Source: Epiperipatus broadwayi (lineage: Eukaryota; Animalia; Onychophora). Taken from it: a DNA stretch of 64,000 nt. The notes under the pieces were generated by a model. The model worked only from the letters and a program-made list of their open reading frames with translations. It did not search any database and had not been told where the DNA came from. Position numbers and translations under genes: made by a program. Below are positions 15,645-30,429 of this stretch, piece by piece. The stretch's first letter is position 1. Each line of letters begins with the position of its first letter. The DNA lies in the NCBI GenBank assembly GCA_028023455.1, contig JAQFVV010000008.1, positions 10,416,001 through 10,480,000 on the forward strand. The letters run 5' to 3'.

Positions 15645-16235
15645 CCCCTGTGTACATGTGAAAAAGATAAATGATCTTCACTAAATGTATAATGTGTTAA
15701 ACCATATATATATATAATATATATATATATAGTGTTCAGTTTATATTAAGATGTCAAATTTTCAAACTTTAATGGACAGGCTTCAGTCTTTTCCATCTAA
15801 CAACTCTTCATCCACTCATATTATTGAAAATCTGATGGAGGGATGCTCAAAGCCCTTGTTGATGCCAAGATTATTGTCATGTCCATGTTGATTTTAAGTC
15901 ACTATGATCTTCCATATATAGGACTTTAATATGTCCATTTAAATAAAGCAGAAGAGGGAAGAGCAGAATTCAGGCTGAATCTGTAATATTTGAATAGAAG
16001 TATAATGTATATAGTGAAAATTTTAGATGTAATTAAAAGGAACTTGAACACAGACTTTCAAGCTCCCTTCAGCTATCCATTCCATCTTAAATAACTGATA
16101 CATATGACCGCATACATGTGAAAAAGATAAATGATATCCAATATATGTATTTCATGCTGAACCAGCACTCATCAGTTGGTCTAGATCATCATATAATCAG
16201 TGCTCAGTTTATATTAAGATAGAAAAATCATTACA
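15645..16235 (-). mobile_element. Family-C tandem (period ~460-470 bp), an old retrozyme-like repeat with a hammerhead
   Basis: CATGTGAAAAAGATAAATGAT at 15655 and 16115; CAGTTTATATTAAGAT at 15737 and 16205. Intact HHR in the distal unit; TA-rich decay at the same position in the proximal unit. Homologous to 54815-55150 and 35755-35900. Confidence 0.75.
16138..16179 (-). ncRNA. Minimal type I hammerhead ribozyme (family C)
   Basis: Minus strand reads CCAA CUGAUGA GUGCUG guu CAGCAU GAAA UACAUA UA^ UUGG: 4-bp stem I, 6-bp stem II, complete core, near-palindromic stem III, predicted AUA cleavage site. Confidence 0.8.
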
Positions 16236-25092: not shown

Positions 25093-27811
25093 CAATACGA
25101 AATCCAAGTTTTATCACTACCTTTTAAAGATATTAGAGTACATTTAATATTTAGATATTTAAAAAATTTATTAAAGTTTATAATTCAGTTAAATAAAGTA
25201 TACTTATTTGGAAATTTTATTAAATAAAATGATGAATCACTTCGACATGGAAGCATTTATTACTCATATAAATATAATTATATTTTTTAAAAATATATAT
25301 TTCATAAAATTTTTCAAAAAATCATTCTATCACCACCCACCCCCACCTCTTATTATATATATTGATAGAATTAATAATAAGCCTTCTCATTTTTGTTTGT
25401 TTCAGTTTCTTTTTCGGTTCCTCATGTATTATTCATCTGTCATAATCTAGTCAGTCAATTTTCCTTCATTTACATGACCATAAAAGATCATTTTCTTGTA
25501 CTTTTGCTGACTTCGTACTGATTGTATTGTGTCAAAATTATATACTGTATTTGACTTTTAAATATAGTTTGGTCTTAAAATTAATATATATTTTTAAATT
25601 AGAGACTTTAATTTGAATTATATTACACTAATAAATCTAACCAGCAAAATAAAGTAATAATAAAAAAAGTGCAGTGCTACGAAAAAAAAGTTTCTAAGCC
25701 ATTATTTATAAACAATGTATTTATGAATTATTAAAATGATCTACTTTTTTGTTGTATATATGCAAAATCACACACACGATCTCGCAATGTGAATATTTAT
25801 AATTCAGCTTTATCAAATTTAATTTGTTGCAGCACTTTTTCTAGTGATGAAAAACAGTTAAGCTGATTTCATAAATACGTTGAAATCTGTTCATTCATGA
25901 ATAATAAGAAAATAAATCATTCATTAATTTTGCACTATATGATTAACAGCACGCAAAATTTATGTAAATAATCTCAATAAACGCATATGTGTATACATAT
26001 ATGTTTATACCTTATATATAAAAGATAGAATAGCTTTTATGTAATCCACTGTGGAAGAGAGGTATTCTCACATCTTGCTCAGAGAAGCAGTGAAAGAAAA
26101 ATATTATTTATGAAGCTAATTTAAATGCTAGTTGTTGAGCGGTCCTTCCCCCCCCCCCTTATTTTAGTCTTTAGCTTACCTAACTAAATATCTGTTTATC
26201 GACCAATAATTGAATAATTATATTAAATGCCTGAGAACTTGCTACCTAAAATACAAATCCTTGTTAAAACCTGAAAACAAATCCAAATGTTATCAGAATT
26301 CAAATTCCAGGTCATGGAACATAGCTAGCAGCTACTCTAGTTAACCAATCTATTAAAACAATAGCTGTAGACAATATTTTTTATTAAAGTGTAAACTATA
26401 AATTTCATTATTTTATACTTTTCGCAGTTTTACTTTATAAGAAATCAAATTGTAATCTTTCAGGCAAATTCTAAATTTGTTTATGAATGAATTATCCATT
26501 TATTTTTATGAGATTTTTTTTATAATTCTAAGAAATAAACAAAGAAAGGAAGCTTTAAATTTAGAATTATAGTTTATCATTTTATCCTTCTTTTTTATAT
26601 ATTAATTGAATAAAGAGTACAATTAACAAAATATATCCCAGTAGAAGATAAATAATAACAACTAACTCCAATTTTTTTTTACTCTAAAAAAATATGGACA
26701 ATTTCATAGAATTTGCTTTAGGCAGAAAATTATAAATACAGTGAAATCCTATGCAATGAATGTAATTGGATCCAGAAGAACATTGTATGCTTGTTTACTA
26801 GGACATTGAAATATATTTGGTCAAAAGATATCCATTCCAGATCTGCATTCTATAGCAAAATTACCACCCCCCACATAAAAACAGAATGTTGTTGTTTCAA
26901 GACCCCCCAAATTTTATTTACACCCCAATAACAAGGTTGAGTGAACAAGTTTACAAAACAACAATGAGACAATTTGAATGAGGTTACATTAATTTTAGGC
27001 ATCCAGATGCACAGTGACTACAAAATGTCAATCTGCCCACCCAGATCACAGTGCGTTCATTTGACAGGAATTGGAATTAAGTTTTTCAATTAACATAAAA
27101 AAGGAACAATATGATAATATATATGGTTACAAACAGAATAATTTAAAAATAACATAAGCACAATATTTTTTTTAAAAAAAGTAGAATAAAAATAAATGCG
27201 AGCAATTTACATTTTTCTATTGTTTAATTATATGCATTTTCTTTATAATTTTAATAATTTATATACTATACATTTTGGCCATGAATATGAGGGGAAAACC
27301 TCAAAAGTACTAGGCCTAGATTAATTGAATTGAATTATTTTGTTACTACTGACAGCTTCTTCTTTCAGCATGTTAAAGCGCTTATATATAGTATTAATAC
27401 AATATAGTAATTTTAGTGCAAATATTTAGAGATTATTTGCATTAAATTGATATTGTATTGTAGATTTCACCTTTAAAGCATTCCCTACCTTGCATGAGTA
27501 TGTAATGAAAATTACAATATTATTCATTATTGGAGAATCTCTAGTCTAATAAATTATTAATAAATATTATTATTCATTAGATAATTTGTGTCAAAGTTGT
27601 GAGGGTAGCAAAATTGACACTTCTCAATTAAACTGTAATAATTTACTTTATATATATATATGAAAAACAAAAACAAGTTATTCACGTAACTTGCTATCAC
27701 TTGTTATTTATGTTCAACAGATGGCGTTTTACCAAAACCACCGAACAAGTGTAAAATTTGTTTACATAAACGAAAAAAGAGTCAGAATTAACTACCTCTT
27801 TCATTTGCTCA

Positions 27812-27858
27812 CCCCCAGATCAGCTGATTTCAAGCTGGTTTGCTCTCATCAGTGAGGG
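27812..27858 (-). ncRNA. Type I hammerhead ribozyme (family A, inverted arm)
   Basis: Exact reverse complement of the motif at 28142-28188. Confidence 0.88.
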
Positions 27859-28141
27859 ATAGAGTATAGAAACTAGATAAATAAGTGATAGCAAGTTACG
27901 TGAATAACTTGGTTTTTGTTTTTCATAAATGTACCTTTAAAGTTTTCTTGCAATGATATATATTGCAGAGACTTTGATTATGTGGTGATACTGAACTGAG
28001 ATCAGACCCATATAAATATCTGGCTTGCTAGGCTGAGTTTGAAGACTTTACCGGTCTGAAATATTCACGCTTGCAAACTGATAGAAACGTTTTGCATAAA
28101 CACTTGAGAGTCATTGTTTAGATCTAGTTTCTATACTCTAT

Positions 28142-28188
28142 CCCTCACTGATGAGAGCAAACCAGCTTGAAATCAGCTGATCTGGGGG
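28142..28188 (+). ncRNA. Type I hammerhead ribozyme (family A)
   Basis: CCCUCA CUGAUGA GAGC aaacca GCUU GAAA UCAGCUGA UC^ UGGGGG: 6-bp stem I, 4-bp stem II, complete core, palindromic AUCAGCUGAU stem III, predicted AUC cleavage after 28182. Confidence 0.9.
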
Positions 28189-28555
28189 TGAGCAAATGAA
28201 AGAGGTAGTTAATTCTGACTCTTTTTTCGTTTATGTAAACAAATTTTACACTTGTTCGGTGGTTTTGGTAAAACGCCATCTGTTGAACATAAATAACAAG
28301 TGATAGCAAGTTACGTGAATAACTTGTTTTTGTTTTTCATAAATGTACCTTTAAAGTTTTCTTGCAATGATATATATTGCAGAGACTTTGATTATGTGGT
28401 GATACTGAACTGAGATCAGACCCATATAAATATCTGGCTTGCTAGGCTGAGTTTGAAGACTTTACCGGTCTGAAATATTCACGCTTGCAAACTGATAGAA
28501 ACGTTTTGCATAAACACTTGAGAGTCAGTGTTTAGATCTAGTTTCTATACTCTAT

Positions 28556-28602
28556 CCCTCACTGATGAGAGCAAACCAGCTTGAAATCAGCTGATCTGGG
28601 GG
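28556..28602 (+). ncRNA. Type I hammerhead ribozyme (family A)
   Basis: Identical to 28142-28188, 414 bp downstream. Confidence 0.9.
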
Positions 28603-28969
28603 TGAGCAAATGAAAGAGGTAGTTAATTCTGACTCTTTTTTCGTTTATGTAAACAAATTTTTCACTTGTTCGGTGGTTTTGGTAAAACGCCATCTGTTGA
28701 ACATAAATAACAAGTGATAGCAAGTTACGTGAATAACTTGTTTTTGTTTTTCATAAATGTACCTTTAAAGTTTTCTTGCAATGATATATATTGCAGAGAC
28801 TTTGATTATGTGGTGATACTGAACTGAGATCAGACCCATATAAATATCTGGCTTGCTAGGCTGAGTTTGAAGACTTTACCGGTCTGAAATATTCATGCTT
28901 GCAAACTGATAGAAACGTTTTGCATAAACACTTGAGAGTCAGTGTTTAGATCTAGTTTCTATACTCTAT

Positions 28970-29016
28970 CCCTCACTGATGAGAGCAAACCAGCTTGAAA
29001 TCAGCTGATCTGGGGG
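28970..29016 (+). ncRNA. Type I hammerhead ribozyme (family A)
   Basis: Identical to 28142-28188, 828 bp downstream. Confidence 0.9.
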
Positions 29017-30429
29017 TGAGCAAATGAAAGAGGTAGTTAATTCTGACTCTTTTTTCGTTTATGTAAACAAATTTTACACTTGTTCGGTGGTTTTGGTAAA
29101 ATGCCATCTGTTGAACATATATATATATATATTGAACAATGATAAAGATATGTGTAAGAGATTATGGTCTGAGTCAACTGGTAGCTATTGGAGTGAAATG
29201 TGCATTTTGGGAATCATTTACATTTTTCATATATCTTGGGTCGTATGTTTATGATTATATCCTTGCATCAGGTATTAAATAAAACCATTCCCTACTTTGC
29301 ATGAGAGTGGTGTAGTGAAAATTATACTACAGAAATATTATTTAATGTAGTACAATATCCCAAATATGAAAAATAATTGTGTGATGTTTGATAAGACAAT
29401 TATATATTGGTATCTAAAAATCAGAGGTTTTGAAAAATAAATCTAATAATTTAAATTAAGTTTGATGCTCCAGTATATGTGGGAAGGCTCTGAAAAAATC
29501 TTATTCAGGCACATGCTATACCATTCAAAGACATTTGTTACACTAAGTTTCACTATTCAAATTTTCATTTGGTAAGAAAAAATATATATTGTATAATTTG
29601 TACATTATGTGGGTCCAATTGCATATTAAATTTTTTACAAACGTCAGAGTTAGAAAACAATTTACCAATTTGTTGAAAAGATCTCTCTTCAATTTTAAAG
29701 TGAATCTGGTTTTAACTTATTTATTCATAAAAAATACTTATATATATATAATCTATTAACTTATTCATTTAGCACTCTATACAAATTTATAAAATCTTAC
29801 AATCTTATATACAGCAACATTTGATAAAAAATCAATTAACCTAAAAATTGAGCTTTGCGACTTTATTTAAATAGAAACCAAGTTGCTACGTTTGGTGTGA
29901 TCTCAACTGATAAATTCCAAACAGCTGATGACATCAGATTTGATTGACAGATGTTTCCTACAAGAAGTCAGTTGATTTTTCTTCACACATTGCTATATGT
30001 AAAACTGAATTTTATAAATTTAAATAACAATATATTATATATTTATGTGGGCATTAACTAATTAATAGATATACACACATACACAATGTAAAATTTAAAT
30101 AATAAAAATGTATTCTCTTTTTTGGTTTTTACTTTTTTTAAAGTGTATTCTTATCTTAACATTTCTAGATTATAAATTGATTTTTTTTAAATTATTAAAA
30201 TATTAAAACATTGGACATAAACTTTTGGACAGAATTTCACTTCTATTCTGCCTCACATTTTTGTAAGTTCAAAATATATTATTCATCCATTTCATGCAGT
30301 AGCAGCTTCCTGGTGGATGTGTGATAGACAGTAATCTCTGGGCCCATTCTGAAAATAGTTTGTATGTACATGAGAAATCACATTCTCTACTTATGATGTT
30401 AGAAGCAGAATTTAGTGTGGTCCAATCCA

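Follow-up and report, generated by a model that had tools for sequence, protein, structure and literature searches.

How did near-identical, non-coding 414-bp units, each with a hammerhead ribozyme motif, come to lie inside a (TA)n microsatellite of the onychophoran Epiperipatus broadwayi? The units form an array within a 64,000-nucleotide stretch of contig JAQFVV010000008.1 (positions 10,416,001 to 10,480,000; GenBank assembly GCA_028023455.1). We refer to this whole stretch as the window and use its coordinates throughout. An earlier reading of the same DNA, here called the original prediction, had compared the array to the non-long terminal repeat (non-LTR) retrozymes of metazoans, which include newt satellite 2, Schistosoma SM-alpha and pDo500 of cave crickets (Cervera and de la Pena 2020, PMC7229834). 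We find support for this comparison: the element is dispersed, young, non-coding, tandem and hammerhead-bearing. Our reading, to which we give a probability of about 0.85, is that the array arose in a single recent event, when an animal non-LTR retrozyme that is both non-coding and non-autonomous was integrated by the reverse transcriptase (RT) and GIY-YIG endonuclease (EN) of a Penelope-like element (PLE).

The array joins a tandem arm to an inverted arm

The whole insertion spans 27659-29119 and is approximately 1.46 kb long. The outer coordinates that had been predicted are the true element ends, and inspection of the sequence places (TA)n directly against both. Tandem Repeats Finder places a direct array at 27883-29123 with a period of 414, 3.0 copies, 99% matches and 0% indels. 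A repeat search of the window likewise gives 300-nt repeat copies whose start-to-start spacings are exactly 414 and 414 nt, in agreement with the original prediction of about three near-identical units at an exact 414-bp period. The same search showed that the 226 nt at 27653-27878 repeat a portion of the unit in inverted orientation (99% complementary). The prediction of head-to-tail multimers is thus right for 27880-29119 and wrong for the left 220 bp (27659-27878), which are an inverted partial copy. The tandem units had been seen. What had been overlooked was the inverted arm, along with the fixed positions of both 3' ends, the presence of a tail on one side and the choice of (TA)n as target.

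The features of the insertion are as follows, with unit positions counted from the predicted ribozyme cleavage site.

27648..27658, no strand: left (TA)n of the target microsatellite, read from the sequence
27659..27878, minus strand: inverted, 5'-truncated arm of 220 bp, running from unit position 354 to 414 and on from 1 to 159, with its sense 3' end outward (left); from the inverted repeat and BLAST pieces
27659..27708, minus strand: 50-nt "tail" that covers unit positions 110-159, includes a 9-bp hairpin and is missing from the other end of the insertion; from the termini analysis
27818..27852, minus strand: hammerhead core of the inverted arm, predicted to be cleaved after 27818 in the minus-strand reading; from the motif scan, exact 35-nt core
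27879..27882, no strand: inversion junction, with 1 nt outside both arms and a neighbouring C>T change; from the repeat search and arm mapping
27880..29119, plus strand: direct arm of 3.0 units, from unit position ~113 to 109 (...GAACATA) on (TA)n; from Tandem Repeats Finder, the repeat search and BLAST pieces
28148..28182, plus strand: hammerhead core 1, predicted cleavage after C28182; from the motif scan, 35-nt core
28292..28341, plus strand: internal tail module, unit positions 110-159; from the sequence and the arm ends of 19 two-armed loci
28562..28596, plus strand: hammerhead core 2, predicted cleavage after C28596; from the motif scan, 35-nt core
28706..28755, plus strand: second internal tail module, from the sequence
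28976..29010, plus strand: hammerhead core 3, predicted cleavage after C29010; from the motif scan, 35-nt core
29120..29133, no strand: right (TA)n of the target microsatellite, read from the sequence

The direct arm contains two full units (28183-28596 and 28597-29010) and stops on the right at unit position 109, without the tail. Flanking the first internal tail module are the putative start sites of reverse transcription, CATA at 28288-28291 and at 28338-28341. The inverted arm shows zero differences from the family consensus, and its hammerhead core is an exact 35-nt match at C8:10443818-10443852 on the minus strand.

As had been predicted, the unit is non-coding. Its longest open reading frame (ORF) beginning with ATG has 35 codons, the longest with any start codon has 54, and no ORF of 150 codons is present anywhere in the 64-kb window. 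The unit contains no tRNA-like module. Its GC content is 35.5%, and that of the window is 23-29%.

Each unit carries a type I hammerhead motif

Our motif scan required five features at once: the string CUGANGA, a helix II that closes, GAAA, a helix III whose final U is followed by H, and at least 4 bp of helix I. It found one complete type I hammerhead motif per unit, including the minus-strand copy in the inverted arm (27852-27818). There were five hits in the window, compared with 0.07 per window in 100 simulated windows of the same dinucleotide make-up. All four array copies share the conserved core CUGAUGA ... GAAA ... AUC AGCU GAU C, with the cut predicted after the last C. The core residues C3 U4 G5 A6 N7 G8 A9, G12 A13 A14, the A15.1-U16.1 pair and H17 are all in place. 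These results agree with the original prediction, which had called an intact type I hammerhead in every unit and cleavage at the same three sites of the direct arm (28182, 28596 and 29010).

The motif is of type I, with helix I open. Helix I consists of 6 bp plus 2 outer pairs, and helix II of 4 bp with a 6-nt loop. Helix III has 3 bp in the monomer and 10 bp in a dimer; it is built from the 10-nt palindrome AUCAGCUGAU, so two motifs would be able to form a long shared helix III. Dimer-type hammerheads that share helix III in this way are known from amphibian repeats and PLEs (PMC7229834).

A sibling family (L050), 78-80% identical to the unit, provides a single independent comparison. Its helix I reads CCUUCA/UGAAGG where the unit has CCCUCA/UGGGGG, and in one of these pairs both bases have changed, from C-G to U-A. 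Helix III of the sibling family reads AUCAUGAU and remains palindromic. Folded as a circle, the unit has a minimum free energy (MFE) of -111 kcal/mol with 70% of its nucleotides paired (z = -4.7 against mononucleotide shuffles), and the 9-bp hairpin of the tail is present in this fold.

Independent insertions share one footprint

The search covered a 5.6-Gb assembly of 18,588 contigs. At least 245 matches to the unit at 90-100% identity were found on many contigs (40 of 810 candidates scored), which shows that the family is dispersed; a BLASTN against the genome had been named as a check. On its DNA features the element would thus qualify as a retrozyme: tandem 414-bp units, a hammerhead in each, low GC content and dispersed copies.

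We dissected the insertion in the window and 20 further loci that were fetched from the assembly. Two of these, L036 and L044, are the same insertion, leaving 20 distinct ones. The loci lie on many contigs with unrelated flanks, and all 21 are in (TA)n or (CA)n(TA)n microsatellites. In 19 of the 20 distinct insertions a minus arm is followed by a plus arm, head to head, with the sense 3' ends outward; the remaining insertion (L048) is single-armed. The listing of exact 35-nt cores gives the same order, with minus copies to the left of plus copies in 20/20 multi-copy loci. Arm lengths range from 30 bp to 11.8 units.

The outer arm ends fall at two unit positions, 109 (...GAACATA) and 159 (...TTTTTCATA); BLAST extends them to 113 and 165 owing to similarity with the TA run. 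Each of the 19 two-armed loci has one ~109 end and one ~159 end, an outcome with a probability of ~2e-6 if the two ends were chosen independently. With one arm ending at 109 and the other at 159, a single end of each insertion bears the 50-nt hairpin tail. At (CA)n targets the arm end moves to position 107 (...GAACA). This shift with the target suggests that pairing of a few nucleotides between the 3' end of the target and the RNA helps to set the start. The inversion junction differs at every locus, with an overlap of 1-11 nt in 14 and a filler of 1-8 nt in 5.

Two arms have internal jumps. In L035:3454-3588 unit position 308 is joined to 177, and in L043:2623-3054 the jump is 165|137. Either a switch of template while the cDNA was being made or a subsequent deletion could explain them.

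The footprint points to Penelope-like machinery

Two fixed 3' ends, a one-sided tail and (TA)n targeting identify the borrowed machinery as Penelope-like. Tandem plus inverted copies, a tail at one end only and a bias for (TA)n are hallmarks of PLEs (PMC8557442). Purified PLE protein cleaves and extends both DNA strands and prefers AT-rich DNA (PMC11167929). With this protein, reverse transcription in vitro begins at a pair of neighbouring internal sites on either side of a stem-loop, ~110 nt into the ORF and ~85-90 nt downstream of the hammerhead cut site; the sequence between the sites is the tail, a signature described as unique to PLEs (PMC11167929). Moreover, animal retrozymes are reported to derive from PLE pLTRs (bioRxiv 10.64898/2026.07.22.740005).

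The 414-bp unit encodes no RT or GIY-YIG ORF, nothing above 54 codons being present, and is therefore a non-autonomous element and not an autonomous PLE. Together with the PLE-type footprint, this argues that the array is a non-autonomous animal non-LTR retrozyme. Insertion by a borrowed RT, as had been predicted, is supported. PLE genes are abundant in the genome: there are 10,241 GIY-YIG candidate loci, 150 scored above the Pfam cut-off, open frames reach 901 aa, and one locus (L061) has a 538-aa frame with both RT and GIY-YIG.

The footprint could arise in the following way. The endonuclease would cut both strands of the microsatellite. Each exposed 3' end would then pair over 2-3 nt with one of two CAUA start sites on the same RNA and prime cDNA synthesis, and the enzyme would circle the template several times. 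This template would most likely be a monomeric circle, formed when the hammerheads of a multimeric transcript cleave it and the product is ligated. The two cDNAs would finally be joined in the middle, mostly through 1-11 nt of microhomology.

We tentatively propose a concerted form of asymmetric double priming, as a possibility that falls well short of an even chance. A dimeric Penelope-type ribonucleoprotein would sit on one hairpin of one circular RNA and begin cDNA synthesis from both cut DNA strands, one on each side of the hairpin. Each start site would serve one strand, with 2-3 nt of target pairing adjusting the start, and both enzymes would travel round the same circle. If this is true, the insertions are evidence from the living animal that RNA circles made by a ribozyme are reverse-transcribed in rolling-circle fashion. 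They would also reveal a strand-specific use of the two start sites that is unseen in the published in vitro system.

Which template and which machinery fit best

Several observations weigh against the retrozyme reading. Mapped on a cyclically extended unit, the 39 inner arm ends are scattered and not one coincides with the ribozyme cleavage site, so the DNA copies retain no direct trace of cleavage. Within the array hammerhead, the sole departure from the core is G10.1.U11.1 at the base of helix II, where G-C is usual. The catalytic fold of a lone motif (-10.8 kcal/mol) is weaker than an alternative fold (-20.3 kcal/mol), which suggests that the hammerhead monomer may cleave poorly. Rfam gave no hammerhead match on the window at gathering thresholds and none at E<=10 on 1.8 kb; the snoRNA and scaRNA matches in the 1.8 kb (E 3.9-9.1) are at chance level. 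On 91 nt the best Rfam match was Hammerhead_HH9, with 24.3 bits against a cut-off of 52 and E = 1.8e-4 in this small search. Its alignment spans 28131-28203, the full length of the model, and places the same helices and core residues. Rfam had been named as a check, and its answer is divided between a full-length alignment that favours the motif and a score that falls below the cut-off. Finally, the 12 PLE loci compared (L051-L062) have no convincing similarity to the unit, only weak short matches (E 0.006-0.9), and their hammerheads and 3' ends (...GGAGTTTTGTATTATA on TA) differ from those of the 414-bp family.

Three PLE copies carry short hammerhead-like motifs whose core is non-canonical, reading ATGA... 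and not CTGA..., at L056:2190-2260, L058:2140-2200 and L059:2120-2190. These motifs lie ~350-450 nt behind the GIY-YIG gene and end on (TA)n ~20 nt downstream. In L059, two such motif ends stand head to head.

What served as the template can be judged from variants that are private to a locus. Excluding CpG sites, L039 has 295 A>T in 6/6 units across both arms, L046 has 339 A>G in 5/5 units across both arms, and the array in the window has 294 A>T in 3/3 units of its direct arm. All three variants are absent from other loci and are shared by both arms where both cover the site. The presence of locus-private variants in every unit fits one monomer-derived template for both arms, read round several times, and fits less well with a multimeric transcript of an older, mutated array. 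In the older arrays L040 and L036, variants are shared by subsets of units, which would mean that arrays change after insertion or that some templates are longer than one unit.

The strongest competing account accepts the same element and Penelope-type integration but takes an uncleaved linear multimeric transcript as the template, leaving the ribozyme as a passenger or with another purpose. It draws support from the inner arm ends, none of which marks the cleavage site, and from the variants shared by unit subsets in the older array L040. However, it must contend with the private variants of L039, L046 and the window, because a multimer transcribed from an older array that had gathered mutations should show such a variant in just one of its units. 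It must also contend with a ribozyme core that is intact in 444 copies and that seems to have been kept through compensatory change in the one sibling family compared. We consider a linear multimeric template rather unlikely.

The 11.8-unit arm of L040 (L040:3241-8121) has non-CpG variants at unit positions 120, 145, 202 and 224 in a subset of non-adjacent units. In several cases the units that share them are two apart. This pattern is a hint that the arm has a higher-order period of two units, which a dimeric template or unequal exchange after insertion could have produced.

It is improbable that a non-Penelope RT of the long interspersed nuclear element (LINE) type inserted the arrays, with the inverted arm arising by L1-like twin priming. 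In L1 twin priming, two cDNAs are primed from the two target strands and joined by microhomology, which leaves head-to-head arms. It would thus likewise give an inverted 5' part, a microhomology junction and 3' ends that point outward. However, the insertions have no poly(A) or simple 3' tail, and their two internal starts are fixed, 50 nt apart and used exactly once each per insertion. Also against a LINE are the tail signature, which is reported for PLEs alone, and two PLE hallmarks, namely the bias for (TA)n and the combination of tandem with inverted copies.

An ordinary satellite or foldback repeat that spread by unequal crossing-over or segmental duplication, with a hammerhead-like string present by chance, would account for the tandem arrangement and for some of the higher-order variant patterns in long arrays (L040), but is hardly credible. 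The loci are independent, spread over many contigs and set in unrelated flanks; they invariably occupy a microsatellite, end precisely at one shared pair of unit positions and differ from one another in their inversion junctions. The motif, moreover, occurs far above chance (5 vs 0.07 per window) and is conserved in a sibling family.

The insertion is young

We compared the array in the window with the family consensus and found 6 private changes in 1459 bp, with 23 of 25 CpGs kept. The CpG observed/expected ratio is 0.54 in the unit and 0.25 in the rest of the window. These values are in line with the original prediction, which had taken retained CpGs as a sign of recent insertion. Across the 21 loci, the seven CpG sites make up 3.4% of unit positions and account for 32% of all variants. 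Differences at these sites are nearly all C>T or G>A, and the same sites have been hit independently in many loci. This mutation pattern indicates germline CpG methylation of these repeats.

The array belongs to one subfamily of a larger family

The exact 35-nt hammerhead core has 444 copies in the genome (218 forward, 226 reverse), compared with 0 for a reversed control. The 21-nt box at the 3' end of the tail (TTGTTTTTGTTTTTCAT) is far more numerous. It is joined to TA in 3,345 genome copies, and in 4,873 it is read through into the next unit (AAATG; ...CATAAATG), often at 413-417-bp spacing. The box thus totals ~8,200 genome copies and is common to sister ~414-bp subfamilies; read-through copies occur in loci without the exact hammerhead 35-mer. 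Only 904 box copies carry the upstream tail of the window's subfamily. Most box copies look like sister ~414-bp subfamilies and not an autonomous element. Taken together, the core, box and tail counts indicate that the array in the window belongs to a young subfamily within a wider ~414-bp family whose insertions number in the thousands.

The sister ~414-bp subfamilies are roughly ten times more numerous than the window's subfamily. L036 (C2254) and L044 (C9264) are short contigs with the same insertion and the same (CA)n(TA)n flanks in opposite orientation. Such haplotigs or duplicated assembly regions mean that the copy counts are somewhat inflated.

The site-1 end is joined to TA in 148 copies, against 3,345 for the site-2 end. 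We considered whether this excess marks the 3' box of a large partner family. This explanation was rejected on account of the read-through copies at 413-417-bp spacing.

The array is nested in an older hammerhead-bearing repeat

The flanks of the array (27470-27650 and 29134-29300) belong to another, older repeat. Related copies were found in runs X1-X4, which consist of short contigs (~100-200 nt) from two organisms, none on record as RNA. These contigs contain repeat copies at 85-99% identity with no usable starts or ends. In them ~27643 is joined to ~29120 and the array is absent, and the hammerhead that is decayed in the window (CTGGTAGCTATTGGAGTGAAATGTGCAT, ~29175-29205) is intact (CUGAUGAGUGCUGGUUCAGCAUGAAAUGUGCAU; CTGATGAGTGCTGGTTCAGCATGAAATGTGCAT). 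Flank contigs that lack the array and have a hammerhead of their own indicate that the array sits inside the (TA)n of an older repeat that itself bears a hammerhead.

A second repeat with a hammerhead, also older, lies at 15645-16235 of the window. It has a period of ~460-468 bp, copies that are 81-87% alike, a hammerhead on the minus strand at 16175-16142 and its own (TA)n at 15720-15745. This ribozyme is unrelated to the motif of the 414-bp array itself and is similar to the decayed hammerhead beside that array. Another hammerhead family, of the minimal Penelope type, is present in the flanks of L040 and L042, at L040:9532, L040:1040 (minus strand) and L042:4888. Its motif is CTGATGA-GGCCACAAGCC-AGAAAC-TAG-TC, with a 1-bp helix III around a CUAG loop.

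Significance and comparison with known systems

The element class and its dependence on PLEs have already been published, and the find itself is ordinary. The original prediction had proposed a candidate new family. A literature search with the ribozyme sequence itself found no paper. The novelty was overstated, as the class and its PLE link are those of earlier reports (PMC7229834; 10.64898/2026.07.22.740005). What the locus offers is a very young family whose insertions are clean enough for the integration mechanism to be read from DNA alone. It provides in vivo constraints on PLE integration, namely the use of one of each start site (19/19), a start that shifts with the target, microhomology at the junction and one template for both arms. 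These constraints bear on how PLEs integrate and on ribozyme-made circles as templates, both of which published in vitro work leaves open. If cleavage and ligation hold, the unit would be a convenient candidate for expressing designed circular RNAs.

The 414-bp family closely resembles the metazoan retrozymes (PMC7229834). Those are likewise low-GC, non-coding tandem repeats of 150-450 bp with a type I hammerhead in each unit, occur as many dispersed copies without LTR, primer-binding site or polypurine tract, and have a predicted RNA that is highly self-paired. The unit differs from them in its full 10-nt palindromic helix III and in the G.U that closes helix II, and it is known here from its DNA. 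The inverted arm, the two fixed ends and the (TA)n target go unmentioned in PMC7229834.

Work on vertebrates (Li, Clavereau and Pollet 2026, bioRxiv 10.64898/2026.07.22.740005) describes retrozymes as non-autonomous sequences of PLEs, found in company with them, and the 414-bp family fits this description. That work rests on co-occurrence and on pLTR similarity, whereas the link here is the insertion footprint, and convincing pLTR similarity was not found in the 12 PLE loci. MRC1 and the other non-autonomous derivatives of Chlamys PLEs in Chlamydomonas (PMC8557442) differ in that they have no hammerhead, belong to another PLE clade and live in a host of another kingdom. Compared with L1 5' inversions, the 414-bp family has no poly(A), its starts are fixed and internal, and its template is read over several unit lengths.

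The closest likeness in the manner of insertion is to PLEs themselves. As in PLEs, a tandem copy lies next to an inverted, 5'-truncated one, with a one-sided tail and (TA)n targets (Craig et al. 2021, PMC8557442), and two starts around a stem-loop are used with both DNA strands as primers in AT-rich targets (Frangieh et al. 2024, PMC11167929). The hammerhead of the unit is also of the dimer type that PLEs have, and in both cases the starts are some 100 nt downstream of the cut site, at 109 and 159 nt on either side of the hairpin in the 414-bp element and at ~85-90 nt in the PLE (PMC11167929). The 414-bp element lacks an RT/EN ORF, and its tail is 50 nt long compared with 30-40 nt in PLEs. Its start sites have 2-3 nt in common with the target, whose sequence also affects where the end falls, whereas no homology was seen for the PLE in vitro (PMC11167929). 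In the same in vitro system neither start site has a strand preference (PMC11167929), whereas the insertions described here use strictly one of each.

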